This document shows, piece by piece, positions 167 through 53,900 of a stretch of 64,000 bases of DNA; within the stretch, counting starts at the first letter, position 1, and every line of letters begins with the position of its first letter. This DNA is from Klebsormidium nitens (taxonomy: Eukaryota; Plantae; Klebsormidiophyceae), in NCBI GenBank assembly GCA_000708835.1, contig DF237117.1, forward strand, positions 1-64,000. The letters are read 5' to 3'. Made by a program: the position numbers and the translations under genes. The notes beneath the pieces were generated by a model. That model was not told the DNA's origin, made no database searches, and worked only from the letters and a program-made list of their open reading frames with translations.

Positions 167-266
167 CTGTCACGCTGTATGGGCTCGTTGCTGTGACGGC
201 TCGGCTACACGTGCCAGTAATGCCTCATGCTAGTTACTAGAGCTTTCCGCCATTAGCCGCCGATTA

Positions 267-282
267 GGGATTTTTTGGACTC
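267..282 (+). repeat. Left terminal inverted repeat
   Basis: GGGATTTTTTGGACTC; with the flanking ATTA the match to the reverse complement of 11987-12006 is 20/20. Confidence 0.85.
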
Positions 283-677
283 TCCGGCGAGCTGGATAAC
301 CTATTTGCCGGGCGGAAATTTCGGGGAGGTTGGCACCGTCCGAAACAAGGATCCTCATACTTTTAGGATCCTAAGATTGAACGGCCGATTGGCAATAGAC
401 TGAGCTCATCGACGGCCCGGATTCTTAGAGGCAGTTGTTCCGCGGTAGTCACAGGCTCGGACCCGTAATTCGGTTTGCCCACGCCGGTGACGTTCTTTGG
501 CAAGGCGGCAAAAATTTCCTGGTCGCCGGAGGCTAGGGACAGAAGACGAATCGCTGAGGTCGTTCCAGGCGACATGACCTTGACGCCATTCAAATTCAAG
601 CGATGGAGCCTAGATTCATTGCAATATCAACGCTCCTGTAGCCTTGCACTTCTTTCTTTAGGCTGGCGGCAAGCAAA

Positions 678-3287
678 ATGGCGTCTGCTCTCTCTGTGAA
701 ATCCTTTGAGGTTGCTCGAGGGCCAAAAAGCTTCATCGTATCAGTGGGCAGCGGAGTCAAGATCAAGGCTGCAAGAGGGGAAAAAGCAGGGGCATGGAAA
801 GGAGCCACCTTTTACATGTCTCGTGTCCTGGAGATCCTTGTGCGGAGGGGGAAAGTTCAGCTCACAGTGGAGCACCTCTACAAAAAGATAGAGCTTACAC
901 GAGATTTGGAGTTGAACGAGCTGCCCAAACAAGCCAAGGCAAATCAACTGTGGCCCAGTCCTTGCCAGGATACATATGATGTTGAAACAGTGCTAGATGT
1001 CTTCACAGTCTTTCATTACAAGACAATCGCCGCCTTATATCCTGGTCAGCTTCCAGCAGAGCTACTGAAAAGTGAAATCTATATGTATAATAGCCTCTAC
1101 AATCCCCTCCTAAAGAGCTTCTCCAAGGTCCCAAGTTTCCCTCCTGTTGATGCTCCTTATGAGTGGCCTTCTCTGGACAGCCACGTGTATGCTGGTTGTC
1201 TACTTACTTGGGCGTCTGAGATTCAGAAAAGCATGAGTACGACGCAGGGAGGCGGCCGTCAATCTATTAAAGTGTCCCTCCCTTTAGGTGGGCTGCCAGC
1301 AATAATGCAGCTCGGTTGGGAGCACCGGGCTGCCACAGCGTCCATTATCTTTGTTCCGCACAAGGCTGTTCTTGATGGGCTTCTTGGAAAGGGCTGGAAC
1401 GAGAAAGTCAACGGGCGAGGACTGGAAAGAGTTAAAGCGTGCATTGCATTTGAGAGCTTGAAGATCAGGTAAGCCTGCCATTGCGCAACCACCAAGCTTC
1501 TCTGCATTGGCAAATGCTTATGGCAATTCGGTGTGGCAGGCCTTGGTGGGGGCCAACTTGATTATTGAATGCTGCAGTACATGACTGGCCTGGGCCCCTT
1601 GCTTTCAATCTGCTCATTTTAGCAGATATGTTTGTAGTTTTCGCCAGTATCCATGCGTGCCATTCAAACCAATGTCTTGGGTGGAATCTGAGCTGCCGCT
1701 TGTATGTGACAGAGATGATGTTTTGAATTCCTATAGATTGTGTTTGCTGGAGGAAACTCAGCAGGAAAATGGCTCGTAGGCTCACACCGCCGATTTGAAT
1801 GCACATGCCTTCTCTCCTTGGGCTAAGCACCAGTTTGGAGTATCTCTAGCAATCAGCAAGAACAGCAGCTTTTCCTCAAGAGCGCTGCTGCACAGCAGTT
1901 TCGCTGAATGTCTTTTGCTTGTTGGTCCTTGCAGGTATCACTACGCACGGCAGTGCATTCTCATGACGTGGCACTACCAGCGCTTCATGTGGAATAGGAG
2001 GGAAGAGGAATGGATTGCCCTTGACCTGAACCCGCAGACTGTGTGTGAGTTGGACAGACTCTCGGTGCTCACCACTTTCAAACAATTCTTTATCCTTCAA
2101 TTCTGATTGCGTTTCTCGCTGAGAGATCAGGGTCTGTCTTTACAGACCAGCGCCATGAGCATGTTGCTTGATCCGTTTGGAATCTGGACATTGCCCAATT
2201 GGTATTGGTGTACTTTGGGAAAGCTGGTTATGGTTTTGTGGTTATTCTACAAGATTGCTCATCTAAGTGGACCTGGGCAGCTTAGTCGTTCGTAGAGTAC
2301 CTGAGAAATTGGTCAGGCATGGTTTCAAGTTGTAAGAACAGCCTTTCTAGAGTGCCACTCTTTCTATGCTCCGAGGGTGCAGGTCTGTATAGGGTTTTCA
2401 ATAAAGATTCAACATGTATCACAGAGTACAGACAGCAGCGGGAACTTGAAGTTCCAACCATGCCGTGCAAGTTCTGGCCACGCCGCGGAGTTTCTGTGAA
2501 GTGCTATAGTTGCTCGGATAGTAACCATGAATGCCCCTTTGTTGCGTCTGCAGCATTTGAACAGGAACATACTTGTTGTGCCGCCTGGCAACAATCACAG
2601 ATTCATTTCGAGAAGCAAAGTTGACGGGTCAGTTCGTGCTTGCTAACGAAAGTGCTCCTTCATGCAGTGCAACGCAAGGAGATTACCCTTCAAGTGTACC
2701 TTGATGGAGAAGAGCATCTTGGGGAGGTCAGAGTTGAGGCCAAAGACAACCTCTCCGATGTTCGGGTGGCCATCATCACCCAATTAGTCGGCATTGCTCC
2801 GCAGAAGTTCAATTTCTTCACCGAATATAAGCACGAGCAATTTTCCAAGGTAGGTTTCTTTTTCGTTGCAGGTTCAGGTCACCATTGATTCTCAAGTGCA
2901 CGGAAGCCAATTTGATCCAGCCTGTCCTCTTGCACACGTGGAAGGCTGTCTTGAACTTGTATTGCTGGTCCGCTTGACATTTGCAATCATTCAAATTTCG
3001 TAAGCCTGTATAGGGACAAAAGATTCATCTGCATTGACAAAAAGTCGTTCCTGACCCGCTTTCAAAAATACCTTTCGTAGGCTCTCGTTGGTAAAGCTGC
3101 CGCTTTCAAAGAAACAAACTGTTTTTTACAGATCCAGTCCCGGTTCGAGAAAAGGTACTCGGTGAAGAAGTTCCTTCTGGACGAAGACGATGGAGAGATC
3201 ATCATAGACAAGCAGGTAAATGGCACAATTGTACTCCGTCTGTTTCATCTGACAGATTTCAATCGCGTTCAACTTGCCCGTTTCTGA
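678..3287 (+). CDS. Transposon second gene, unknown function, with a C-terminal ubiquitin-like (beta-grasp) domain
   Basis: Exons 678-1468, 1935-2044, 2383-~2520, ~2668-2849, 3132-3287 (or spliced at 3215). Junctions at 1468/1935, 2044/2383 and 2849/3132 are GT-AG and phase-compatible; the exon 3/4 junction is uncertain. The C-terminus ITLQVYLDGEEHLGEVRVEAKDNLSDVRVAI...KFNFF has a beta-beta-alpha-beta ubiquitin-like pattern (by eye). Confidence 0.65.
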
Positions 3288-4360
3288 ATCGACGACAGCA
3301 TCCTACAGTCGATTTCTGGTTGAAAGTGAATTGCACCGTGCATGCGCAGCTTCTGAGATGTCTCTCTCTGCAAATTCTGTTCTTATCTGATCACAGCGGC
3401 CCTCTAAACCATTTATTCATTGTAGAGATCAGCGCAATTGGTTCGTGTGCAGGACCCCCCTCCAACGAATTTTGACGACTTGATGAACATCTTATGATTC
3501 CTCGAAGGCATTGCTTAGCAACACTTGGCTGCGGTGTGTCTATTGTGTATCGAATCTGTAAATATATGGTCCTTGTCGGGAGCCGTGTTAAAAGCCTTCT
3601 GGCAAATGGGAACGAACGTGCGGTGCGCTGGTATGAAAACTGGAAGCAGCGCAGCATGCATGACTTGCCTACAACTTCATATCATAATACTTTGTGCGTA
3701 CCGTCATAAATCTGAGATGATGATATAAAAGTTGTTACGTTAGCCTCCGGAAAAGGTGGATTGGATGTCAACAATTGCACGGTGCATCACTCGAACATTT
3801 CAATTCATGCATGACTCGCAGATATGGCTGATTTGAGAGGCCGCGCGGACGCGTTCGCGTCGAGATTGTTTCTCAAGGACTAGCTGCCATCCTATGAATC
3901 ATTGCGAGTACTTTCATCAATTGTCGAAGCCTTGATGCCACATGCATATATTGGATTTACGTAATTTTAGAAACAGGACCGGATAATTGACTCGAGATAT
4001 GTGGCCGCTGGTCAATCATATTAGCTTGCATGGCATGAGCGGCAAGGCGAGCTAGCCGATGAGTCGATCCGAGATATCGAACGAACCGACTGCATGAGAA
4101 AATGATTGAAAAACCTCGCCATACTAGTTTCCATGAGGAAAAAAGCGCGCCTCCCCCCCCGGTGACATGGACTCAGGGGGCGTTTAAAACGCCCCCCCTA
4201 GTTCCCTCCCTTCCCCTTCCCAAGCTTGCCCCGACCGTTCGGAATCATCCTCCTGACGAACCCGTCACAAGCGCACCCGGCCAGGATGCACGAGTAACGA
4301 CGAGCGAACCCGTGACGTCGACCCCACTTGTACCCGCGTACAGTCGTCCCTCCATCCCCT

Positions 4361-4444
4361 CGGCTGTGCTCGGGATCGAACCGAGAACAAACCGCTTAGT
4401 ATTATTGAAATACTAGCGGCTTGCTTGCCAAACTCTACACAGCC
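4361..4444 (-). ncRNA. tRNA-like element (pseudo-tRNA or head of a tRNA-derived Pol III unit/SINE), anticodon ambiguous (AGT-like)
   Basis: Minus strand: perfect 7-bp acceptor stem GGCTGTG/CACAGCC and perfect T-arm CTCGG-TTCGATC-CCGAG (B box). The anticodon hairpin CCGCT-AGTATT...AATACT-A-AGCGG is extended by an intron-sized insert, and the D-arm is degenerate. A T6 run lies downstream at 4139-4144. Confidence 0.55.
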
Positions 4445-4772
4445 ACAACTATCGGATACAATTTGGCATAATGCCATGATGCCAGTGCGGCTCGATTTGA
4501 CATATACCATACAATGAATTAATATTTCATGCACGTAATAATCGAAGGTACTGGATTGACTCCACGCGTGGAACTCTGTTGCATCCCAGGCTTTGTGCGG
4601 GCAAACAAAGCAGGCAAGCGCCCGCACTTGCAGTTCAAATATATATCGAGCTACACCTCTATAAATACACCCCTATAAATAACGACTCAAGTTGCTGCAA
4701 GCTATTCAAATTAGTTGCTACCTACATTTGACGAAGGGTCTCAGTCGAACCGCCTCAACCTTATGTACAGAG

Positions 4773-7700
4773 TCACTCGGACATCATTCTCAGTTGCTCA
4801 ATGAGCTCTTCTTTCTCCCTGTCTCTAATTCGCTCTTCCTCCAACAAACGGATCTCGTTTGCATCGAGCGCTTCCTCCCATGCATCAAGCTTTTCTGCCC
4901 GAGCCTCGATCTCTGCCGCATCCATGCAGTCCCCGTCCAGCTCTTCTTCTTCGCTGTCCCCCTCCATCTCGTCCGCGCGGCCTCCCGCATTGTCGGCATC
5001 GTCTGCGCCCCGGTCTGCATCGCCGTCCTCGGCCAAACCGTCACCATTGTCCGGATCCGGAGCATCACCTGCGGGCACACGCCGAACCCATCTCTTTCCG
5101 ACCCGATCGCAACTGGCGCGGAAGGCGGCACCGCCCTCAGCAGCATCCGAGCCTTTCCACGCCTGGCGCCTCCCCTCGGTCAGTGCTAAGCGCGCCTCCT
5201 TAGCCGCCTTCTTGGCAGCCTCTTGAGCTCGCCTCTGCTGCCGATGGTGGCGGTGGCGGTGCTCGAACTGGACGAGCTGAGCCAGCGGGTTGATCTTGTC
5301 GAAACCCCCACCGTGTTGCGTGTGATGGATGTACTCCCACTTCCATCGCCAGTTGGACTTCTCAATCCCCTGCAGACGCAACACGATTTGAGACACGAGC
5401 TTCACAGAAAATCTGAACCAAGTCTCCACAGCGGCCATGCCAGATATGCGACACTAAGCCTAATGACTTTTGCTCTCCTTCCGTTGGTCGAAGCAATGCG
5501 ACTTTGTTGAACCTGTCCGTAACTAGTGGTAATGGCTTTCATAGAAATGATGGAAACTTGGACCCCAAAGGGATCCGAATAAAGCCCAACATCTGACTCC
5601 AGAGTCCCTGAAAGCTACCACCAGCATCCTCAACCTAAGGTTCAAGCTAGAAACTGATCTCTCCCAACTCAGAACCGTACGCAGCATAGCACATACCTGT
5701 CCGTTCCAGGCGGCCAGACTTCCGTTTCCCAGGTGCCGGTTGTTGTTTATGAACCACCCGCCGTTGGTATACAGCGTAACCTGCACATGAAATGGAAGTG
5801 AGCACTCGAAAGATGGCCTCAAAACTAAGCGAAGGCTGCGCAGCCTAAACGATGCTGCACAATCTGGGTAGTTGACTGGCTTTAAGAGCATAAGATCTCA
5901 TGAACAGCCTCCTTGACTAGATTCTTAAACCTCTTGAGAGCGCCACGTCCAGAAACGTCTTTGAAGACGTCTCAAACAATGTGATCAGCGGCAAAACTTA
6001 CTGTACACTGAGCGGCCAAGTAAAGAAAAGCACCACGAAAGTTCAAGATTCACACAACCACGAGCGTTTCAGCTTGGAACGGAATGCCAAACTCACCATA
6101 TAGTGGGTCACCCCGGCCTCGCCAAAACAGTCCGTGAATTTCTCCAGGTACGTGTCGACCGCCTTGTCGTGCATGCCCGGATCGCTGCCCGTCGCAGCGC
6201 TGTACACGGGGTCACGCAAGAACGGCACGTACTTGTCGAAGGCCAACCACATCAGCACCATCTCCGCCCGCTTGTCAGCGTCCGGCTCGATGTTGACCAG
6301 CTGCGCCCAGACCTTCTGGGCAGTGATTCTCGCCACTGTGCCGCCGTTCATGCTGATCTTCTGCGGCTTGTTCCCCTTGCCCGCACGTGGATCCTGCACG
6401 ATCGTGCAGTGGCCCCCATGCACTCCGATGCTGCTGAGCACCGTCTCAATCCCTCGTAAGAGCCCGTCCCTCACCGCTGCCTTCTCGGGGGTGCTGCAGT
6501 CCATATTCCAGTAGCGTTGCACTTGTCGATGGAGGTTAACCTCTGCGAGGCGAGTGACTGCGTGGAGGGGGTCTAGGTGCCACCGCTCAAGGGGGATGGG
6601 GAGCAGACACCTGAACCCTGGGTCCTTGACGTCCCGGTCCGGTTTCTGACTTTGCTGCCCGTTACGCACTCCCCCAGGCCACTGCCCCTTCACCCGTTCG
6701 CGGACGCTGTAAATGTTGGGCTTGGTCGCATTCGCCCCGGGCTTGACATTGAAAAGAATTTTCAACGTCTTCAAATCGCACGACCCATGCCACTCCACCT
6801 GAAACTTCCCAACGCCCGGAACAACCAACGGCTCTCCCCGCTCATGCCGTTCGATTGCAGCATACAACATCGAGACCTCCTCACATGCCTCCCTGCCCAC
6901 GTCTAACCCCTTCCTGGGAACCCCCAGCGAGTTACGACCAGCCTCGACAGCCCGCTCCACATCTCTTACCCCCCCCCCTTCCCCAGCAAACCCGCCATCG
7001 GAGTACTCGCCTTGTTCCAAGTCCGTTCGTGCACTGGCTGCGGCCTCCCGAATTCTGCGCACCACCCCGTCACCAACCTCTGCATTTACCCCCCGACTCT
7101 CCCTCCCCTCGTCCTCCCTCCCTCTGATAGACTCTGCGGTCCCCCCCTCGGTTTCAGACGCTCCTTGCCCACCTTCTTGCCCCGCGACCTCGCCTCCAGT
7201 TCTCTCCGGGGCACGGCCTTCCTGCGTTGGCCTCCTCGCAGAAGCAGGGAGCAGACCCCTCCGTTGTCGCTTTCGAGCTGGCTGTAGTGGTGGATCCGCT
7301 CCTTCGGCGTCCACGGGCTGGCGCTCCCCTTCAGCAGCACCTGGCGGCAATGTCGAGGGTTCGGCTTCCGCTTGCGCCATCTCTGACGCCCGGGTTGGCG
7401 CGACGCGCAGTTTGGGGGGCACTCCGAGATGCCACTCAAGGGTGGCGCGGTCCTCCTTCTGGACCTGGAAAAATGAAAGCCCGTTTACGAATGCACGAAC
7501 TACTGAGATTTGCCCCTTGTATACGTTTGACTTCAATGGAGAGAACGTCAACCCTGCAGAGTTTCGAGGGGAAGGAACGCCACCACCATGGCATGCTCGC
7601 CCAGGGCATGCTCGGCCCCTCGCCGAAAGGACTTCTTTGCAGGGGGTAAAGTCTACTCCCAGAATCTGCCCCCAGATTTGAAGAACAAGATACCCCTCTT

Positions 7701-10700
7701 GCTTGGAACGGATGCTTCACAAACGTTCTAATTTCCTGGCCAACATCACTTACAAGGGGGTAGAGTTTGCCCCAAGAACCTAAACAGCCTAACCCTCCTA
7801 CCGGAAAGAAAGTGAAGAAGCAGAAAGAAAGAACGCAACATGTCTGACTAATGTGACTAATGTGCATACTGTCAACTTGAAACCTCTTGTCAGGCTCTAT
7901 CCCCAAAACGAACAAAACGAATAGGAGGGGCAATCAGTCTGTGCGAGCAGCTGCGCAAGTGCTGCTTGAAGGACAGGGAGACTTTATGCTGCTAGGGAGA
8001 CTTTATGCTGGTGGGGTTGCCCTTACAAGAAGCAAAGAAGAAGACGAGCTCGTCAAGTATGCACATCCTAGCATACACATTCAGGCACATCCTATGTGCT
8101 GCAGCTTACCTGAAAGGCTGTGAGCGTGTAGGTATCAAACTCGGACTGGATCTTGTACCCAGAAGTCTCGAGAAGCCTGGGGTCTTGTGCACCGTTCATC
8201 CCCACAACAACGCCTCTCTCAAGCTTGACGCCATTGCCAAACGCCGCCTCGTCCATCTTGTAGCACACAATCAGCTTCGGATGTTCTGAATACAAGCAAC
8301 GGAAAAAATGAGCATGTTGAAAACTGAATCTATTATGGTTGCAACAACACAGCAGAGCAAGACCGAGCACTCAGCCAATGGACACAAGAATAGAGCAGGA
8401 CTGAGCATCATTTGAGCCAATGGGCACCAGAATCCCGGCATAACAGCAAACCTCTGCCAAGATGCTCTGCCCTAGTCCACAAGTAAACCAGGCTTATCAT
8501 TGATTCAGTGCCACCACCAGATTCAGACACTTACCCACTGGATTGAGACCAAGATCCTTCACAATCTGCCGGAGGACGTTGTCAACGGGCACCCATATAT
8601 TGATGGGCATCTCCTCTGTAACCCACTTGCCCGCTTCATCTTTGACCTCCCGAGTGCCATGCCTCTCCACCAGCTGCCCTAATTCGTCCATAACCTGCAC
8701 GGCAGTCAATTGCGTACTATATTGCCACCCCTACATCAAACCAACCATCACTTGGACAGATCTGAGAGCAGGTGCAGGGTACAAGTATCGATGACTTTAT
8801 CAAGAAGGGCTCGGCAGCAGCAAATTGCTGGAATTATCGGGACTGGTCACAAGCAAATTAGCTTCTTTACGTTGGGACTACAGGATGGTTTCTCAAGTGG
8901 CTCTCCTCCAGAAGGCAAGTTGAAATCATAGATAAATCATTGGCCTCATTGGGAAAGACACAGTCACAGTATCTTGCTGAATGCAATCCGAGTGAAACTT
9001 GCTGCAAATGTATCGTTGCATTACCTGGCTGTTGATTTCCCTGCGCTTTGCAGCCACATGCGCAGGCTTGGGCAGGAGCGTGGGCTTGAAACCGGCACTC
9101 TTGGCTGCAGTAAAGAGCTCTTTGGCAACGCCGCTGTAAACCAAGAAGAGATTATGAGGGATCCAGATTATAAGAGATTGAGATATTCAGATTGAGAAGA
9201 TCATGAGAGATCTCAGTGCTAAGAAACTCTGGTGGACAAGGAACCCCAGAAAGTGGCCCAAAACTAAAGACCCAACTAGGAAGACAGATCCAAAACTCTG
9301 GTAACGAGCCAGTGCCTGCAATCTTCTAAACCTCGATGCACAACCAGCGGCAATCAGGTCGCACAAAGCCAAAGAGAAGTTGCGTCAAGACTTGAGCCAT
9401 CAGAAAGAACTTACCCATAAGTGCGGACTGTTCCCCCGGCCAGCTCAACCCCTGCAAGCGCGGCGGCCGTGGTAAGGTTGGCGCTGATTTTGTCCAGCGC
9501 TTCTTGTTGGACGTCCTTGCGAATGCCGTTGAACTTCGTGTTCTCCAGGGCTGCCTTGAGCTCCGTCCGAGTCGCCCACGTACCCAACCATTTTCCAAAG
9601 CGCTCTTGCTCCTCCCGGGTCCCCGAGAGAGGAAGCCTCCTCTCAGACAGCCGGTTATAGGCCTGGATGCGTGCCGTCTGCCTAGGCGCGAGAAGCATCC
9701 TGACAGAGAAGATATCAAGAGCGTATCACATATACAATGCATTTACACTTTGCTCAAATTGTCAACTAGACCTCAGCTTTTGCCTCAAAGCAAATCCTAT
9801 TGATTTGAAAGACAATATCTTGTTGCTATCTGAAGCTTGGTGCATTGTCTTCCTGCACACACAACCAGGACATCTTTGCCGGCTTCTCATGTTGACAAAA
9901 ATATGCTTTGCTTCTGATTCAACTGAAACAAAAACTCTATCATCTGCTACTATCATTCTGGTTCGACAATTCACTCTGATACGACACTTCAGAAGCAACC
10001 TCTTGACCGCAGCTGACGTTCAACAGCTTCCGATGCAGGCTTCATGATTTGAAAGTTGTTTTTAAGGCACAGAAGTCAGCCAGTACAGTATGATTCTAAG
10101 TTGCTTTAGGTCATGCATTTGAGCAGCCCTCAGCAATTACTCCACCTGGAAGATTCCAAATCGTTAGGGCTTTACCTTGCTTCCCTTCCACGGGCCATTG
10201 CAGGTCCACCATCAACGCGGAGATCATACACATCCTTGCTGTCCCGGCGGCGCAATTTGCCACCATTCCGCTGCAGCTTATTATTCCTTTTCCTGAGGAC
10301 CCTGTTCGTATGCCGCAAGTTACGATTTGTCCTCTTGCTCTCTTCATGGCGAGTGCCGAGCGCGTCTAGCTTCAACTTCAGCTTCGATGCTTCTGCATTG
10401 GCCTTAGCACACTTTGCAATAGTTGATTCTACTCTTTTCAGGTGCACTGCCTCTCGCCGCTCAACTTGAGCAACTCGTTGCTCCTGCTGCTCTACCTTCC
10501 TAAACAACTGGGCAATCGTTGGCTGAACCTGCTTGATGGCATCTACCTCTGTTTGCAGACCTTCAGCGCGATTGTGTAGGGCCCAGGAATAGGAATGGAA
10601 TCCATTGTTGTATCCATTGCCTAGGAACTCAAGGTACTGGGTCACGTTCTTGATCTCTGGATGCGAACCTGTTTCAGGGTTGACAGGGAGGGACTTGCCG

Positions 10701-11059
10701 TCAGCAAACACAGCCAATTGTTTTGTGCTTTTGCTTTGCCTAAGAGCTTCTAGCTGTTCTAGAGACAGTGCTTTAACATCTACAGCTGGCTTGAACCAAT
10801 CCTTCAGGGATGTTTGAAACTTGTAGGGTGGTTCGGCACCCTTCCTCGGCGTTGGGGTAGCAACTGGATTGGGAACACGAAATGGAGAAGGAGTTGTTGG
10901 AGAAAGGCTTGCAGAATGTTTTGGAACTGGGGAAAGAGGGACGCTAGCAGGTCTCCTAACAACAGCAGGACTGTGTAAGGTGTTTGGATCAAGCGTTGAA
11001 AGAAAACCAGCGGCTGGTTGCAAATTTCTAGCAATATTGAACATACTAGGGAATGCCAT
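4773..11059 (-). CDS. RAG1/Transib-like DDE transposase, 8 exons, ~1214 aa
   Basis: Exons 11059-10176, 9681-9415, 9133-9025, 8694-8535, 8285-8110, 7464-6097, 5780-5697, 5369-4773. All introns are GT-AG and phase-compatible; total 3645 nt, no internal stop. Motifs: LTTAAALAGVELAGGTVRTY (cf. RAG1 [20 protein letters not shown]), IVCYKMD (first D, 8251-8253), CDLK (second D, 6775-6777), DPLH (cf. DALH), VTHYM (cf. ITNYF), GSLAAWNGQ|GIE (cf. GSIGAWASEGNE; catalytic E at 5361-5363). Confidence 0.85.
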
Positions 11060-11986
11060 TTTGGAAAGGCATGGTCGGAGCTACGCAGCAGAAATTAACC
11101 CCTGATCCTGCTTTCAGCATCCACCAGCACAGAAGGCCGCCAGAATAAAGACAAGGTGAAGCTGTGAAGTTCCTGTATAGCTCTGTTTGTCAAAGGCCTG
11201 GAAAGAAACCCGAGACCCCTAAAGATTCAAAAAGTCAACAGAAGAGGCAGTTACACGATCCAAGGGCCGGGATCGAAGCAAAAAGATTGAACGAACGGGA
11301 GAGCACGGTTTCCCGCGCGGAAAAGCTTACCTCTGCATATCCTGCAACTTAGGCCAACTCGCGTGCTTGAGCTTTGTGCATCAGCATAATACAAGGTTCT
11401 CTTCCCTAATCTTCCTTCACAGAACGACTAGCAATCAGCCGAGCAGCCTTTGCAATCCGTATGGGGCCAAGCAGCTTCCTGCTTCAGCTTGTTGCTGGCA
11501 CAGATGTGCTCTGCTGCCCAAACAATGGTGGTCAAATAGCTCCTCTGATCATCGTGATCAATGCCTGCAATTGGCAGCCTTCTTTCAACTTCAGCCTCAG
11601 GGTTCAGGCCTTGCCAGGATCAGGCAGACATTATTGATTTTTTATTTTCTGTTGATTACTCTATGGCCTGCCTGGCACAGTGGGCAAAGCCTAGGTATTA
11701 CCTAATGAATATTTTGAAAGGCGAAATGGCATGCGCAACCTCGTCTACAAGGCCCCTCACACCCTGCATGTCTTAGCCAGGGCCAAACTGGCTTAGAGCA
11801 GGGACAGCCTTCTACCGGTCTGCTGACGGAAACAGGGCCCGGCACTGTACGGACTCTAAGAGCTTGGTCAAAACTCGGCACCTGATTGGTTACACGGGCT
11901 CCGATATCGTCCTACGTGGCAGTTGAAGTCAAGCCGCCGGGAAAAGCGGTGCACAGGTCCCCCACTGAGTTACACGGCTTGATTCC

Positions 11987-12002
11987 GAGTCCAAAAAATC
12001 CC
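11987..12002 (-). repeat. Right terminal inverted repeat
   Basis: GAGTCCAAAAAATCCC followed by TAAT; exact reverse complement of the left end. Confidence 0.85.
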
Positions 12003-12015
12003 TAATTAGTATATA

Positions 12016-12514
12016 NNNNNNNNNNNNNNNNNNNNNNNNNNNNNNNNNNNNNNNNNNNNNNNNNNNNNNNNNNNNNNNNNNNNNNNNNNNNNNNNNNNNN
12101 NNNNNNNNNNNNNNNNNNNNNNNNNNNNNNNNNNNNNNNNNNNNNNNNNNNNNNNNNNNNNNNNNNNNNNNNNNNNNNNNNNNNNNNNNNNNNNNNNNNN
12201 NNNNNNNNNNNNNNNNNNNNNNNNNNNNNNNNNNNNNNNNNNNNNNNNNNNNNNNNNNNNNNNNNNNNNNNNNNNNNNNNNNNNNNNNNNNNNNNNNNNN
12301 NNNNNNNNNNNNNNNNNNNNNNNNNNNNNNNNNNNNNNNNNNNNNNNNNNNNNNNNNNNNNNNNNNNNNNNNNNNNNNNNNNNNNNNNNNNNNNNNNNNN
12401 NNNNNNNNNNNNNNNNNNNNNNNNNNNNNNNNNNNNNNNNNNNNNNNNNNNNNNNNNNNNNNNNNNNNNNNNNNNNNNNNNNNNNNNNNNNNNNNNNNNN
12501 NNNNNNNNNNNNNN
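12016..12514. other. Assembly gap
   Basis: Run of N. Confidence 1.
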
Positions 12515-28067: not shown

Positions 28068-28816
28068 GGCAAAATGGAGTGTAGAGGCGCTGGACAGCTC
28101 CACGCAGATGGTTCTCATCACCCACAGCGAGTAGGTGCCTTTATGAATCTGCTCGGAGCGCGTGGCGATGTGGTTGGAGACCAAAGCAAGCGAATCGCGG
28201 ATCCCGCATGGTCTCTAGCAGAAATGCCAAGCGCTCCGCTGAGCGGCTCTCAAGGCCATCTATTTGCAAGTTACTGTTGAATTTAAAAGCGTTGCAATGA
28301 GGCGGCATCCATCCATCACACTATGTCACGCGATGGCCACATGGACGACACTTTATCAGACTGAATTTTCGGAATGCATCATGCCATGCAGGGTGCTATA
28401 ATATCAGTAATGCTAATCAACACCAAGCGTCTGCACATGCTGAATTCGGTTTCTATACGATATAGCTGAAACGGTCCATGGCTGCTGTATGCACGTTGCA
28501 AAGCATTGCGCATGATTCATATGTATAATGTAGCCAGCTGCCCTGGCGGATTCCGGTGGGCCGGACAGAGCGGAGAGACTAGAGAACTCGTCAAGCTGCC
28601 CGTGCCAGCATTTCCCTAGCTGTCTGAAGTCAGAACAGCTCTGCAAATCGCGCATTGAACTTGCGTTGGCGAAAGTTCTGTGGATTCCAACTTTCCTCAT
28701 ACATAAGTTTTAGCTGCCAGTGTGATTGGCATTGCTGCAAGCTATCCGCAAGTTCTTATTTTGTCACGGGTGGCACTCACTTTCCTGTCATTGTTCGCTG
28801 TTGCGATCAGGCAGAC

Positions 28817-31800
28817 ATGGAAGATCTCTTTGGGAAAGCCTTGGGTGCCCTTGAGGGCACTGGGGCAAAAGCGCTGAGCGCTTTGGAATCTTCCTTGAAC
28901 GAATATCCAGAGGCCAACCTGGCTGCCATTCCTGCTGCTCCAAAATCACTCCCTGAAACTGCACCTGTCGCTCCATCAGCGCTATCTGCTGCAGAACATG
29001 TCTTATCTTTCTGGGAAAACCTGGACCTTGAGAGCAGAAAGACGCAGTGGGACAAGATTGGCGTGCAGATCAGCCAGTTCCAGGATACGTCCGCTCAGAA
29101 CAGGCGCAGCCTGGCAGAACAGACCAAGGCCTACAGGAGTGGAACGGCCTCAGAGGCGGAGAAGCGAAAGCTGATCCCGCTTTATCAGGCGGAGATTGAC
29201 AGTTTGACAAAGAGGGCGAAGTATGCGGAGAGCAGCTGGAGCAGCATGTATCAGCTTCTGTGTGATGCGCCAGACGTCGTGCCTACTCTCAGCTCCATGC
29301 TGGAGATGTCTGAGCGGGTTGTGGAAGCGGAAGGGGAGGCGAGGAAGTGCCGGCAGGAGTTGGAGGCAAGTTCTTCACATCCCCAGAGAATTTCAATATG
29401 CTTTTGATTGTCAGCATTGGCACTGTGTGTGCCATGGGATATTACATTCGCCCTCCTTTGGCAGCTTCGCGCCAAAGAGCAACTTGAAGTTCTTGATGGC
29501 ATCATCGGCATCAAGGATAGAAAAAGTTTTTAATTCTACAGAATGTAATCCCCAACTTATGACAGGAACGAAGTAACTCTAGACACCTGAACCCATACAT
29601 TTACCTGGTCGGCACCTGTGCCCCACCCTAAGCACCCCAACTGACCATACCCGTCCCGGGATTACTTGAGCTCAATTTAAACTTCTGAGAGACCAACGCA
29701 GATGTTGCTTTGGAGTGGTGGTATGCCCCTCTAATTTTTACAGGTGAACGAGAAAGGTCTGCCTTCAATTATGAGCAGATATGAGAAATGCACTTCAAGA
29801 AGTCAAACACCCAACAATGGGGTCTTGTCTGGGCCAAGTAGCACAGCATTGAGAAGCCATGCGTGCAGTGAAGTGGGGGCATTTAGTTTTTCTCTCATAT
29901 ATTTTGCACCACCTCAGTGGATAGCAGCCCGTCGTGAACGCCCCTGTGACTTGCCCCAAGCTTGATATTCTAATTTAGGAATGAGGTGACGATTTGTTTC
30001 AGCGTCAAAGGATTGACTGGATTTAAAGCTGAGGTTGTTGAATATGCATCGGTTTGCAGATGGCACGGAAGGAGGCTGGCAGTGCCAAGGCACTGCAAAC
30101 AGCAAATCGGAGACTGGAGGAACATTGTTTGGAGCTGGTAAGCTGTTGGCTTTCTCCGTGACTGGGAACTGCCGGACGCGGAAAGGAGAACATTTGTTGG
30201 TTACTCTGACCGTTTAGCCGTAGGAGCAATACTTGATGCCTTCAGCTTTGTGATTGTTCCGTTTCTGTCAATTCTTGTTTCCTTTGTCATACAGCTCGTA
30301 GGAAGTCGTTGCCTCGAAAGCATGCCTGCGAAATGTTTCTCTAGGTCAGCGAACATCTTTTTTTGTCTTGCTTCTTTCAAAAAAGGCTGCTTTCCCCTCG
30401 GGAAGTTCTAGCTATGATTCTTACACCATGTTATGAAGAATGGCAGTGCTTCAGAAGCTAAAAATTCATGAATCAAGCAAGCGGTGAGGTCAAGGCTTGT
30501 TCAAGACTGTGAAAATAAGCACAAACGGAGTACAAGAGATACATCTGACCCTCTTGTTGGCTGCTTGATGGAGAGAACCCCGAAAGTTTTGTGTCAATGC
30601 CGATTGTAGCTGCGGTCGAACCAGGCAGCAGGCGGACTCCTCAAGAAAGTGTATCTGGTTGCCACCAAAAAACTCTTTGTCCCATCACTTTGCGATGAAC
30701 TGCTGTTCAAGTCTAATACACCCACTGCTCCTCCCAGCCCCTTGTTGACTCATAGTTGGGTTTCCACTTCTAACCGACTTCACACAACTGCAGGAAAGCG
30801 CTATGGACCGGAAAGTTGAGGAGGCGGTCGCGCTGCGCCTCAAAGAAGCAGAGCGGGAGAGGGATACATTCCAAGCCACAGAAGTCGCACTCGCAGCCCA
30901 GCTGGACTCCGCAAAAGAGGCGCTCCAAACCCTCCAAAGACTGCACGACAAAACTCAAAGCCAGTTGTTCGATCTACAAAGCGAGTCAGAGGCGAGAAAG
31001 GCCGCTAAGCAGTACGAGCTCGAAGGGTTGATGGAGGAACTAGAGAAGGCGCAGGCGCGTGCCGAGGGTTTGGAACGCGTTAATGCGGGGTTAGCCCGGG
31101 AGTTGGAGGGGGTTAAGGCGGGGTCAAGGGAGAAGCCGAACGTGAGCGACATGGAGGGGAATCTGCAGAGCAAGGAGGAGCTGATCTCGAGGCTGCACCA
31201 GCAGATGCAGCAGCTAGAGCAGGAACTAGCGGTGAGATTTTTTGCAATTCAAGTTCTGCGATCATCGGTGGACAGAACAGAGAAAGGCTGTAGATGGACT
31301 TGTCTTGTGGAAGGAGGGCCAAAACCGTGGAGGCGGTCTTCTGCTGCCTATGAAAATACCCGTCTGTTTTTGGGGATATGCTTTTCAACTTTTAGCAGAA
31401 GTTGGTAGCGAGTTTTTTTCAAGTGTGATCCTTCTTCTTCCTGGTGGACGGGGGTAGGGCCCAGTTGCTTTTCGTCTTGGTCCTCAAAGAGACTTACTAA
31501 GATGACTCTCAGCGGACAAAATGCGACCCTAAAGTTGAACGGTTGATACTTTTGAAAGCACGAAGGAGCACAACCACAAACTTCGGGCCTTGCTCGACAG
31601 TCGGCTATTGTGGCTTGCGACGCAGAAGGTCTCCTTTTTTCTTGTGAGCATATTCGGCCATCCTTTTTCTTCTTCAATCCGACCTTAATTCGTACAAAAG
31701 ACGACTGAGAGACTAACGGAGGGTCTGCGGTTTACAGAAGCAAAAGGGTGCAAGTCAACCGTGGTCCTATCAAAATTTTTAGTCAAGCCTCTTATTCTAT

Positions 31801-34800: not shown

Positions 34801-36796
34801 TTGCGCAGCGGGAATCCGAGATGGAGAGCGGCTGGTTACTTGAAACCCTGAGTAGGATCAGGTTCTTCATCATCGCTCCTCCTTTTCGAGCCTTTCGTGT
34901 GTGTTTGTCTTGAGAAGAGTCTCTTGCTGGCAGTCTGGGTAAGCTTTTAAGTCGAGATGTTCACAAGGGGGCTTCCCTATTCCGAGCTCAATATCTCGTG
35001 CCGTTACAGGACCCCTCCGTTTCACGTACGGCCCTTCGAACCCAACTTCGGATAGATAAGCGAAGACAAGCTCAAGTCAGTATAGAAGCCATCTTCATTG
35101 TGGTGTGCCCCTTATTTCCTCTGACCGCACCCCTTTCTTCCCCCACAGGGCGGGCCCAACAGGAGACCGCCAAGCTGACGTCAGACAACGTCAGCTTGTA
35201 CCAAAAGATCCGCTTCCTGGAAAACTTCAACTCCCAGAAAGCGCCAGAGTCCAAAATCCGACGGGTCGGGGGGCAACAAACCGGGAACGTGACAGTTGTG
35301 GGGGGCACTGGGGCGGGGCGAAAAAGCAGTCGGTACGCGTGTTTCAGCATGGATGACCCAGGGGGTTTTGAGGGGGGGCGGCAGCCGAGAGACGAGGAAC
35401 TGGCGGGGGGTGGGACCGGCCCAGGTGAGCGGTTCCTTGGTCTCCTTATGCCCTTGTTTATCGTGGCCTCAACTCCACACGGGTGTCACGCTTCGGTGTC
35501 TCCCAGGAAAGTTGTGCGCTTTCTCCCTTGTCGTGCTATGGCCGACGTCGCGGTCGCTTTCGACGTGCGCAGCCTCTCGGGTTGTTCAGGTTGGCCCTCC
35601 ACATAGTGGAGATGAGTTGCAGGCCTCTCGAAAGTTTCTCACATGCTTGACAGACAGCGAAGAGGCGCTTCGTTGGGGAGAAAAGCGCAGTCTAGATTTT
35701 TGTTGCCAATTCCAGGTAGCGACAGCTTTGGATACTTCGGAAGGCCTAAGTGTCTTCCTACTCAAAGTTCAAGAGTAGAAAGAGTGCTAAGGCAGGTTAT
35801 CTCCGAGCGAAGGCCACCCTTGAGAGCGTGCAGGTTGCCTCCGAAACGATTCTCGTCTATGCGGACCCTCTTTTGAACGTGCTCGTTCTCAATCCCCAGC
35901 TGCTGAGGTGCGAAGCCGGGAAAGTACACAGACTACGGGCGACCTTTTCTCGAGCTGGAGGCACCCATTGACAGTGCAAAAATTGCTCTTCAAAATGTTT
36001 TCTTTTTCACGCGAGACGCCTTCCTGAAGGCTTCTCTACTGCCGTCTCCAGGGGCTGAGGTGCGGTACCGAAAGATGTACGAGGACCGAATGGACCCCTT
36101 CAAGGAGTTTCATCAACGAGAGCAGGAGCAAAGCTACCGGAGCTTACGGCTCCACGACAAGGTGAGTTGCTGCAGTCTCCTGTAGCGGATGCGAAATTGT
36201 GTGAAAGGAGTACAGTCTCATTTCAAATCCTTAGACCTGCAAGCAGTTGGCGCTGGCCGAATTTGAGGTATGAGGCGCTGTAGCCTCACTGTTGCGACTT
36301 GCAATCCTCCTGATAATCGGTTCACTGTATTTGTGCGAACCGTTGGGGCGCTTTCTCTCTCGATCAGAAGCAGTGGAGGTCGAAGCGTCAGAAAACGGAT
36401 TCGCAAGCGCACTGAACTGCCCAAAAGCGTCTCTCAACGACTCTGCAAAGTACCTTCAACCGTTCGGCTTCTGCCTCTCACAAAAATCCAACCATTCCGC
36501 AGATCACGCTGACGAGCGGGCGCTTCTTCCTGAGCAACAAGTATGCGCGCACCTTCATCTTCTTCTACACGATCCTGCTTCACTTCCTCATCTTCTTCAT
36601 TTTGTACAACCTGTCAGTGTGTAGTCGGGGTGCGGTAACGGAAGTTAGCGCCAGCCAATTACCGCAAGACTTGTTGGATAACGTTGGGTTAGCAGGACAC
36701 GTGGAGGCCGGGGGAGAGCGGACCTTGGGGGATGTGATTGCGGAGAAGATGGGCTCTTTGATGGAGGGCGCGAAGAACCTCACAACAGCAACGTAA
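28817..36796 (+). CDS. CASP: Golgin CASP (CUX1 alternatively spliced product / COY1 homologue), 10 exons, ~786 aa
   Basis: Exons 28817-29365, 30060-30137, 30794-31231, 32444-32581, 32876-32977, 33375-33536, 34266-34479, 35149-35424, 36052-36161, 36503-36796 (2361 nt). Motifs: SFWENLDL, YQAEIDSLTKRAKYAE, QRERFRKR, DNVSLYQKIRFL, YEDRMDPF, and the C-terminal TM segment SNKYARTFIFFYTILLHFLIF. Intron 1 is GC-AG. Confidence 0.92.
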
Positions 36797-50965: not shown

Positions 50966-53900
50966 TTAGTAGTAAGCACCAGGGATCTGGCCGTTAAGCT
51001 GGCAGTAGACCATTTTGCAGAAGTTGGGGTCCGACGCCGTCACAGGGTCCGCCGTTGGGCACGTGTAGCCCGTGGGGCAGCAAAACACAACCTGGACACG
51101 TGGCAAAGAAGCATTCGTCAGTAGCTGCAAAGCAACATCTGTGTCTTCGAAAACATTCCGACGGCCGTCCGAAGTCATCAAGGGTGCAAGACGCACGTTC
51201 GGATGCGCTTTGAGTAAGATCTGCTTTATCGAGGCCTCTTATCATTGTCGCGCATTCTTCAACTTTGACCTCGCCCCGCGACAGAGCACCGATCTAAGAC
51301 GTCGACATTATACAATGGAGCGCGACAAATCATCTCGCGCCCCTTTACTGTAGCGAACCCCCGAAGCTTCACTGGAGCGGAGCGCCAATGCATCAGAAAG
51401 GGGACTCCCCCACCGAGGGGATGCGGATCACCACAGAAACGAGAAGGAAAGAAGGAACAGACACTCACTTGCAAGCACGACGTGCACTGGTTCAGCGCCT
51501 GCCCCTGCCTGTCGAACCCGCACACCCCATTCTCCGGCTGAATGGGCTCCATCGTCGCGCTCGGAATGGTGTTCGCGGCAGTCTGCGGCCGGGACGCAAA
51601 CGTCGGAGAGGGGGTCAGGAGAGTAACCGGGGTCGGGTCGGGGGAAGCTCCGGGGACGGGGTCGGTGGTAACAAGAGACGAAGTGGACTGGAGAGTGGTC
51701 GACTGGCTGGCCGCGCAGACAGCGATCGGGCCCGGGGGGGGGCACGCGGAGTCGGCGCAGCAAGCGAAGGAGCTGCCGAAGGCGTTGTAGCAAGTGTAGG
51801 GGAGGGAGGACATTGGGTCGCAGCTGCGGGTGGGAAAAGGGGACGAAAGGGATTGTTAGCGTAGTGCACTGAAAAACTTCTGTTTTAAAGTCGAGCGTGT
51901 TCCCGTTTGTCATCTCTAGTCAGGTGGGTGCTTGAGGTACAAAGAAGTCTCGAGAAAGTAGGGATCAGGCGAGTTGTGAGCGCAAAAAAGACCCCTTCGT
52001 ACTTCGAACGTGGGCCGAGAACACAACCTTCGAAAGCTCAGATTCACATTCACCGAGAGGGAGGCAGGCTCTGCAGATTTGCACTTCCGGTTCGACAGTC
52101 TCATAACAAGCAGCTTTGTCTTGGTTGGTCGGACTTTGAGCGCGCTCCTGAGGAACGTCACTTACACATGGCCGGAGGTGGCTGCGTAGGTTGCCACCGG
52201 CGCAGGGCCGGCAGTGACAGTTGGCGCAGCGGTGGTGACAGCTGGCGGGGCAGTAGTGACAGCTGGCGCCGCAGTGGTTGAGACAGGGATTCCGGCCACA
52301 GTAGGCGCCGGGGTGGGGACAGGGTCGCTCGCGCCGGTGGGGGCCGGGAGCGGGGCAGCAGAAGGATCCCCCACGACCGCACTGAACGTCAACGGGATGG
52401 AAGCGCTTCCCGTGGGGGTGGGGGTAGGGGTCTCCGTCGTCGTCGGGGTAGGGGTCAACAACACCACGGGGGTAGGGGTAGGGGTATCCGTGCCCGCAGC
52501 GAGAACGGTTGGGGTCGGGGTAGGAGCATCGGTGGGGGCCAGTGCGGGGGCAGCCGAGGGGTCCGCCGCCGTCGTTGCGGAGAGCTTCGGAAGCGCCGTC
52601 GTCAAAGTCGGGGTCGGGGTAGGGGTGTCGGTCGACGTAGGGGCGGGGGTGGTCCCAGCGGGAGTAGGGGTGGGGGTATCCGTAACCGCGGGGGCCGGAG
52701 CGACAACGGTTGGGGTCGGTGTAGGGGCGTCAGTCGGGGCCGTCGCGGGAACTGACGCCGTTGTTGCAGAGAGCTTCGGAAGCGTCGTGGTCGAGGNNNN
52801 NNNNNNNNNNNNNNNNNNNNNNNNNNNNNNNNNNNNNNNNNNNNNNNNNNNNNNNNNNNNNNNNNNNNNNNNNNNNNNNNNNNNNNNNNNNNNNNNNNNN
52901 NNNNNNNNNNNNNNNNNNNNNNNNNNNNNNNNNNNNNNNNNNNNNNNNNNNNNNNNNNNNNNNNNNNNNNNNNNNNNNNNNNNNNNNNNNNNNNNNNNNN
53001 NNNNNNNNNNNNNNNNNNNNNNNNNNNNNNNNNNNNNNNNNNNNNNNNNNNNNNNNNNNNNNNNNNNNNNNNNNNNNNNNNNNNNNNNNNNNNNNNNNNN
53101 NNNNNNNNNNNNNNNNNNNNNNNNNNNNNNNNNNNNNNNNNNNNNNNNNNNNNNNNNNNNNNNNNNNNNNNNNNNNNNNNNNNNNNNNNNNNNNNNNNNN
53201 NNNNNNNNNNNNNNNNNNNNNNNNNNNNNNNNNNNNNNNNNNNNNNNNNNNNNNNNNNNNNNNNNNNNNNNNNNNNNNNNNNNNNNNNNNNNNNNNNNNN
53301 NNNNNNNNNNNNNNNNNNNNNNNNNNNNNNNNNNNNNNNNNNNNNNNNNNNNNNNNNNNNNNNNNNNNNNNNNNNNNNNNNNNNNNNNNNNNNNNNNNNN
53401 NNNNNNNNNNNNNNNNNNNNNNNNNNNNNNNNNNNNNNNNNNNNNNNNNNNNNNNNNNNNNNNNNNNNNNNNNNNNNNNNNNNNNNNNNNNNNNNNNNNN
53501 NNNNNNNNNNNNNNNNNNNNNNNNNNNNNNNNNNNNNNNNNNNNNNNNNNNNNNNNNNNNNNNNNNNNNNNNNNNNNNNNNNNNNNNNNNNNNNNNNNNN
53601 NNNNNNNNNNNNNNNNNNNNNNNNNNNNNNNNNNNNNNNNNNNNNNNNNNNNNNNNNNNNNNNNNNNNNNNNNNNNNNNNNNNNNNNNNNGTGGGGGTAG
53701 GGGTTTCGGTTGGCGTTGGGGTGGGGGTGGGAGTAGGGGTTTCGGTTGGCGTAGGGGTGGGGGTTGGAGTTGGGGTGTCGGTTGGCGTGGGGGTAGGGGC
53801 GTCGGTCGCGGCAGCGGCTTTGTTGGCAGCGGCGCCGGGTCCCAACGGGGAGGGAGGGGGGTTGTTCCCAGGCATGAACGACGCGCACTGGGCCTGTGTG

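Follow-up and report, generated by a model that had tools for sequence, protein, structure and literature searches.

A gene on the minus strand of the first 64,000 nucleotides of contig DF237117.1 of the green alga Klebsormidium nitens (GenBank assembly GCA_000708835.1; this whole stretch is referred to here as the window) probably encodes the DDE (Asp-Asp-Glu) transposase of an 11.7-kb, two-gene cut-and-paste transposon of the CMCT clade, most likely in or near Lanisha and not in Transib proper. A first-pass annotation of the same DNA had described the gene as an intact, potentially active RAG1/Transib-like transposase in a plant-lineage genome, related to transposases known mainly from animals. 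The observation behind that description is genuine and well supported, but it was over-read; the family falls within a wider transposon clade that had been described before. If the present reading is correct, a green alga has a transposon family with the RAG1 core fold in its entirety, more than a handful of motifs. The accepted view that RAG1 arose from Transib/RAGL elements of animals is unchanged.

The RAG1-type core and its family

As judged from predicted models, the core architecture of RAG1/Transib is present in full, down to the topology of the insertion domain, and the likeness of the protein to RAG1 is real at the level of the fold. Two proxies were modelled, namely a homologue with the full core (P0024) and a piece of window exon 6 (residues 731-994). 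P0024 is an intron-free protein of 585 residues that contains the whole core, is 30% identical to the window protein over 427 residues (E 4e-35) and lacks zinc ligands. Its model (predicted local distance difference test, pLDDT, 82; predicted template modelling score, pTM, 0.81) places D118, the counterpart of the first catalytic aspartate of the window protein (D491), on the first strand of a predicted RNase H fold, the equivalent of the second aspartate where strand 4 ends, and the equivalent of the glutamate on the helix following the insertion. In a Foldseek search of the PDB with this model, the best 49 matches were all RAG1, BbRAGL or HzTransib, with E-values down to 7e-12, followed by Hermes at 7e-4. 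VIA-align returned a Z-score of 22.9 to mouse RAG1 480-1008, with 426 residues aligned, and scores of 21.4 to HzTransib, 20.4 to BbRAGL, 13.1 to the P element, 9.4 to Hermes and 9.0 to ISCth4. The exon-6 piece (pLDDT 91.7) behaved likewise, its best 41 Foldseek matches being all RAG1 or RAGL, and 233 of its 264 residues were aligned to mouse RAG1 668-936 at Z 11.8, with the next unrelated chain at Z 5.8. By the aligned range, D768 of the window protein would lie near D708 of mouse RAG1. The final Y-M of exon 6 would fall on the Y-F that precedes H937, so that V995 and N1000 would correspond to H937 and H942.

This core begins with an N-terminal helical part for DNA binding and dimerisation and a pre-RNase H part, followed by the RNase H fold with D491 and D768. 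The insertion domain that comes next is large, helical and of the ZnC2/ZnH2 type; the helix bearing E1025 and a C-terminal domain complete the core. The structural alignment, which starts near residue 480 of RAG1, opens with the LTTAAALAGVELAGGTVRTY region of exon 2, and the C-terminal tail after E1025 is helical, first basic and then acidic.

The sequence comparisons point to the same relatives. A profile of the C-terminal half of the family was run against 177,635 PDB sequences, of which the top six were BbRAG1L (E 0.017) and RAG1 (E 0.08-0.37). In the alignment, SMNG faces MNGN, TxYMHxLYAH lies opposite TNYLHKTLAH, and GSIGAWASEGNE is the counterpart of the Glu motif. HzTransib was unmatched by the family profile at E<=10, and no PDB sequence was matched by an N-terminal-half profile (first Asp to the CxxH motif) or by a phmmer search with the exon-6 piece. 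The Pfam RAG1 families were matched neither by the exon pieces (E<=1) nor by the homologues (three at E<=1, ten at E<=0.01). The motifs that the first-pass annotation had paired with RAG1 (LTTAAALAGVELAGGTVRTY, YKMD, CDLK, DPLH, VTHYM and GSLAAWNGQGIE) are all present, and they sit where the structural and profile alignments place them. Foldseek, VIA-align and the profile further agree on the RAG1 core architecture and insertion-domain topology that it had proposed; the top folds are RAG1, RAGL and HzTransib, and not those of another superfamily without a RAG1-type insertion domain.

The family itself was collected with an exhaustive phmmer search, in which residues 731-994 were compared with 1.84 billion representative proteins. 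It comprises 72 relatives, mostly metagenome or transcriptome-assembly fragments and at best 45% identical, which are collinear with residues 207-1154 of the gene model apart from a single insert. Because most homologues join residue ~551 straight to residue ~735, the low-complexity stretch between two RNase H helices of the window protein is taken as an insert; these 181 residues are disordered, and a G/R-rich stretch occupies the same position in relative P0001/L002. A relative is encoded at 296-5910 of a 15-kb metagenome contig (L002; Joint Genome Institute, JGI, Ga0590114_0012433), where exons 2-8 follow in the same order and the matched segments share 33-61% amino acid identity with the window. 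No similarity between the contig and the window was found beyond the transposase exons, neither a shared partner gene nor flanking synteny. A protein kinase gene lies ~7 kb downstream of the relative on that contig.

The family alignment shows which parts of the active site have been kept. The first Asp motif, LKLDE in the family, is YKMDE in the window, and the second, VEWHLxGDLKTLK, reads WHGSCDLKTLK; IPLxRVHxCTLH corresponds to IPLERWHLDPLH, SMNG is identical in the family consensus and the window, and the Glu motif GSLGxWxxQGxEKSH appears as GSLAAWNGQGIEKSN. The catalytic residues D491, D768 and E1025 are retained, as are most near-invariant residues of the family. In RAG1, C727, C730, H937 and H942 form a C2H2 zinc site that links one half of the insertion domain to the other. 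Most relatives have such a site, composed of CxxC and H(3-4)H/C, with the CxxC 20 residues past the second Asp in most members. The window has NIYS in place of the CxxC, and THYMVTLYTN where the family has THYMHILYAH. The nearest relatives, P0091 and P0001, are also without CxxC, and both halves of the site are absent from a second subgroup (P0024, P0034 and P0074). Four further members (P0011, P0042, P0047 and P0073) have lost the CxxC, which reads NLYD, and retain the H...C pair of the second half. Since these four keep half of the site, it seems to decay stepwise in the family. As read from the alignment, the window copy has lost all four zinc ligands, keeps the catalytic triad and carries the 181-residue insert. 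Thus, the description of the gene as intact holds for D491, D768 and E1025, but not for the four zinc ligands, nor for the proposed N-terminus, which lies outside the main mRNA.

Name- and domain-based searches added little. Pfam and NCBIfam gave nothing relevant for all exon pieces and 13 homologues; weak coiled-coil Pfam matches in exon 1 were the sole matches among the exon pieces. A word-indexed protein search, too insensitive for this purpose, returned six matches with the alignment and one with the window piece, none with an informative name, and a cluster look-up gave the annotation 'hypothetical protein' only. A search of the language-model Atlas with the exon-6 piece found only meaningless HU-like matches at a score of 0.5.

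Transcript, termini and partner gene

The gene model was built on canonical GT-AG sites, and its eight exons splice to 3663 nt, or 1220 codons, with no internal stop. The uninterrupted eight-exon frame of the first-pass annotation therefore stands, though not its length of ~1214 amino acids. The model was compared over 5300-11100 with contigs from four RNA runs, which fall under four study codes and are labelled as two organisms. Seven joints were found, each coinciding with a splice-model junction once cut offsets are allowed for and each with CT..AC ends on the plus strand; because all seven coincide, the model is correct and the frame is not a chance one. All seven junctions, for which an RNA check had been proposed, are exact in the contigs of the four runs. 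RNA depth over this interval was 50-270 in exons and 0-10 in introns. The transcript is present and spliced in every RNA run listed, under seven study codes, with an exon word depth at least 20-fold that of the introns. The transposase gene is real, transcribed and correctly spliced. At 7087-7146, where exon 6 is G-rich and of low complexity, the contigs of all four runs break; one contig of run X1 goes on from there with 30 letters that have no match in the window, which may reflect a paralogous copy or an assembly artefact.

The 5' end of the main transcript differs from that of the gene model. The RNA contigs lose their match to the window at 10670 and then extend for 208-255 letters, the first 30 of which are window positions 11333-11362. 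On the minus strand an AG acceptor precedes 10670 and a GT donor follows 11333; RNA depth at 10732-11100 is at the intron level, and 11363-11540 is covered at a share of 1.00 in 20 RNA runs. Because the main mRNA splices 11333 to 10670, the ATG at 11059 and codons 1-130 are outside it. In the transposase frame, the 5' exon holds a stop at 11430-11428 and no later in-frame ATG, and the first in-frame AUG of the main mRNA is that of M288, from which a protein of 933 residues with the whole core would be read. Within the intron there is nonetheless an open frame of ~138 codons (overlapping open reading frame, ORF, 10172..11059), for which the probability by chance is ~0.002 at 3 stops per 64 codons, and the alignment of homologue P0019 begins at model residue 207, upstream of M288. 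For these two reasons a minor transcript or a non-AUG start is possible, and a minor or alternative transcript may use the intronic frame as coding sequence.

The gene is enclosed, together with a second gene, by perfect terminal inverted repeats of 20 nt. Similarity between the repeats ends past these 20 nt, and their 16-mer core has no other occurrence in the window than these two (chance expectation, 0.03). At the ends the sequence is ..CCGATTA|GGGATTTTTTGGACTC .. GAGTCCAAAAAATCCC|TAATTAG.., so the flanks permit a 2-bp duplication of TA, or of AT because ATTA/TAAT is palindromic, but not one of 5 bp. The termini begin (TA)GGG and end CCC(TA), and are not of the CAC..GTG heptamer-like kind. 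No second copy of the transposase was found in the window. A scan of a metagenome collection with the 18-nt end yielded 14 loci but no second copy or empty site; because no similarity extends past the 18-mer at any of them, these loci are put down to chance.

The second gene lies on the plus strand from 678, convergent with the transposase gene, and its largest ORFs were checked. The largest of these (678-1472) gave a sub-threshold match to the BAH domain (E 0.054, 13.8 bits, 106 of 121 profile positions), and none matched kelch or RAG2. The partner has no counterpart in L002.

Table 1. Features of the transposase gene and of the element that contains it (window positions; residues numbered on the 1220-codon model)
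Feature	Positions	Strand	Basis and remarks
Exon 1 of the gene model	11059-10176	-	Splice model
Exon 1, RNA-backed part	10176..10670	-	Residues 131-294, coiled-coil region; M288 codon 10198-10196
Exon 2	9415..9699	-	Residues 295-389; contains LTTAAALAGVELAGGTVRTY; both junctions in RNA; aligned with P0024 and P0019
Exon 3	9025..9133	-	Residues 390-426; splice model and RNA
Exon 4	8535..8694	-	Residues 427-479; splice model and RNA
Exon 5	8110..8285	-	Residues 480-538; first catalytic Asp D491 (YKMDE), codon 8253-8251
Exon 6	6097..7464	-	Residues 539-994; D768 (CDLK) 6777-6775; D836-x-x-H839 (DPLH) 6573-6562; THYM at end
Exon 6, zinc positions		-	N788 and S791 where the family has CxxC
Low-complexity insert in exon 6	6880..7422	-	Residues 553-733 (181 in all); G, A, E and R abundant; between two RNase H helices
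Exon 7	5697..5780	-	Residues 995-1022; V995 and N1000 where the family has H..H zinc ligands; start of GSLAAWNGQ
Exon 8	4773..5369	-	Residues 1023-1220 and stop; catalytic Glu E1025 (GIEKSN) 5363-5361
5' non-coding exon, main transcript	11333..11540	-	RNA; true 5' end at or past 11540
Intron of main transcript	10671..11332	-	RNA depth, AG/GT sites; holds ATG 11059 and codons 1-130
Left terminal inverted repeat	263..282	+	ATTAGGGATTTTTTGGACTC; outer 2-4 bases possibly target sequence
Right terminal inverted repeat	11987..12006	-	9 flank bases, then assembly gap 12016-12514

Probable placement within the CMCT clade and competing readings

The CMCT clade, composed of CACTA, Mirage, Chapaev, Transib, ESTA and Lanisha, is defined by the same motifs as those of this family together with HHpred similarity to RAG1 and duplications of 2-5 bp, and its termini are mostly 5'-CA..TG-3' (Kojima 2025, PMC12730594). 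Maumus, McDaniel and Carey (Repbase Reports 2020) proposed Lanisha as a cut-and-paste superfamily; the moss Ceratodon purpureus was its first known host (PMC8245031), and GenBank MT647524 is one of its transposase references. Lanisha has since been placed inside CMCT, in a tree that includes Lanisha-1_RhIr and Lanisha-2_StPi (Kojima 2025, PMC12730594). The family described here has the CMCT motifs, with CxxC 20 residues past the second Asp and HxxxxH or HxxxC ahead of the Glu, and the window copy, on the evidence of the alignment, has lost both zinc motifs secondarily. The apparent 2-bp duplication, read from one copy, would fall in the range for the clade, but the (TA)GGG..CCC(TA) termini of that copy do not have the usual CMCT form. 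In the ESM Atlas, the nearest folds are uncharacterised clusters of Mucoromycota and rotifers, at template modelling (TM) scores of 0.70-0.71 versus 0.56-0.63 for RAG1 clusters, and the best AlphaFold DB clusters, also uncharacterised proteins, point in the same direction. The suffixes RhIr and StPi presumably stand for Rhizophagus (irregularis) and Stylophora (pistillata), from which the nearest AlphaFold DB entries presumably come as well. The taxa of the Lanisha families in Kojima's tree would then match those of the nearest folds (Mucoromycota and coral), a match that depends on these presumed assignments. The most economical placement of the family is CMCT, probably in or near Lanisha.

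Lanisha resembles the present element in its green-lineage host and in a DDE transposase with motifs of the EnSpm/RAG1 type, and the membership proposed here draws on matching taxa. The EnSpm-like transposons with TA duplications (ESTA) of rust fungi (Puccinia) were recognised through HHpred similarity to RAG1 (Kojima 2025, PMC12730594). Compared by description, their transposase is like that of the present family in its profile-level similarity to RAG1 and in its C(2)C and H(3-4)H motifs, and their TA duplication and extra captured gene recall the apparent 2-bp duplication and the partner gene of the window element, but the ESTA host is a fungus and its extra gene is TET/JBP, whereas the element described here is from an alga and has a partner with at most a weak BAH-like signal. 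CACTA/EnSpm, Mirage and Chapaev together form the CMC superfamily (Yuan and Wessler 2011). Neither Pfam Transposase_21 nor any other CACTA family was matched, and the window element lacks termini of the CACTA kind.

Several points weigh against this placement. It is drawn from the literature and from the taxa of the nearest folds, and the assignment of the nearest AlphaFold DB entries to Rhizophagus and Stylophora is itself presumptive. The PDB ranking is unable to split Transib from its sister lineages because no structure of the CMC type has been solved. The duplication is apparently 2 bp, as read from one copy whose right flank offers 9 bases before the assembly gap, and the (TA)GGG termini of that copy differ from the CA start of most CMCT elements. 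All four zinc-ligand positions (N788, S791, V995 and N1000) are substituted, and the start codon at 11059 is absent from the main mRNA.

The main rival is a domesticated, non-mobile derivative, in which a host gene would have kept a RAG1-like fold for DNA binding or some other role. The transcription already described, spliced in every run listed and at least 20-fold deeper in exons than in introns, would suit such a gene, as would an intron in the 5' untranslated region (UTR), the loss of all four zinc ligands with D in place of C in the CxxH motif, the 181-residue disordered insert and the long coiled-coil and acidic tails. The exon structure, moreover, is conserved in the relative on L002 at 33-61% identity across matched segments. 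Nevertheless, that conservation comes without synteny outside the transposase exons, and perfect 20-nt repeats enclose both this gene and a second one, which is the layout of a young insertion. The three catalytic residues have also been retained, along with most positions that hardly vary in the family, and at least two subgroups contain zinc-less members, for which reason the zinc site may be dispensable here. Domestication is accordingly regarded as improbable.

Strict membership of the Transib/RAG1 lineage, that is, an animal-type element intact in a green-lineage genome, was what the first-pass annotation had favoured. The best solved structures over the whole core are indeed RAG1, BbRAGL and HzTransib, the best PDB profile matches are BbRAG1L and RAG1, and the family has the D-D-E spacing and the CxxC/H..H positions of RAG1. 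Transib, RAG1 and BbRAG1L (PDB 6PQN/6PQX; 4WWX, 6XNY, 6B40) share with the family a whole core fold at Z 20-23, the same insertion topology, DDE residues on the same secondary-structure elements and, in family members, the zinc-ligand positions. However, identity to them is ~10-15%, the profile E-values are marginal (0.017-0.4) with HzTransib unmatched at E<=10, and Pfam RAG1 families are matched by neither exon pieces nor homologues. CAC..GTG termini are lacking, the flanking repeat is apparently 2 bp instead of 5, the window copy has no zinc ligands, and the partner gene is not RAG2-like; ProtoRAG has a convergent RAG2-like partner (a kelch propeller), whereas the partner here is convergent but not RAG2-like. 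Uncharacterised fungal, rotifer and cnidarian proteins are, in addition, closer in fold than RAG1, and the motifs in question are common to the sister lineages of Transib (PMC12730594). Strict Transib/RAGL membership thus fails on sequence profiles, termini, duplication length, partner and zinc site, and is considered very unlikely.

Nor are RAG1-related transposases new to the green lineage. Tao et al. (2022) reported 39 plant proteins that are Transib-like, and their supplement names angiosperm species (PMC9435367). Because CACTA/EnSpm, Lanisha and these plant proteins have been published (PMC12730594, PMC8245031, PMC9435367), a RAG1-related transposase in this lineage is not without precedent. 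Placement among the hAT, P, MULE or KDZ transposases was rejected because of lower fold scores (P element 13.1 and Hermes 9.4, against 21-23 for RAG1/Transib) and the absence of Pfam matches.

Predicted mechanism and surroundings of the element

By analogy with related systems, a dimer of the transposase would bind and pair both ends of the element and nick them. Hairpins would then form on the flanking DNA, as in RAG, Transib and hAT, releasing the element, which would be reinserted with a 2-bp stagger. It is conceivable, though unlikely, that the zinc-less, transcribed window copy is itself an active transposase and that its family is a green branch off the Transib/RAG1 stem that arose before animals. 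Were this so, a complete RAG1 core, and perhaps hairpin cleavage with it, would be older than the split between animals and plants, and the C2H2 zinc site would be dispensable for a RAG1-type core. With its perfect ends, complete open frame in the mRNA, strong transcription and intact predicted triad, the copy is suited to experiment, and could be used to test RAG-type chemistry and end recognition outside animals as well as the need for the RAG1 zinc site. It would also offer a structural anchor for the little-described Lanisha/CMCT branch.

Beyond the element, the window contains two assembly gaps (runs of N), at 12016-12514 and 52797-53690. The sole recognisable neighbour is a CASP/CUX1-like golgin, an ordinary, generic eukaryotic host gene ~17 kb from the element, with plus-strand exons at 28655-29407 and 34998-35606 that match Pfam CUX1_N (E 2e-24) and CASP_C (E 5e-6).

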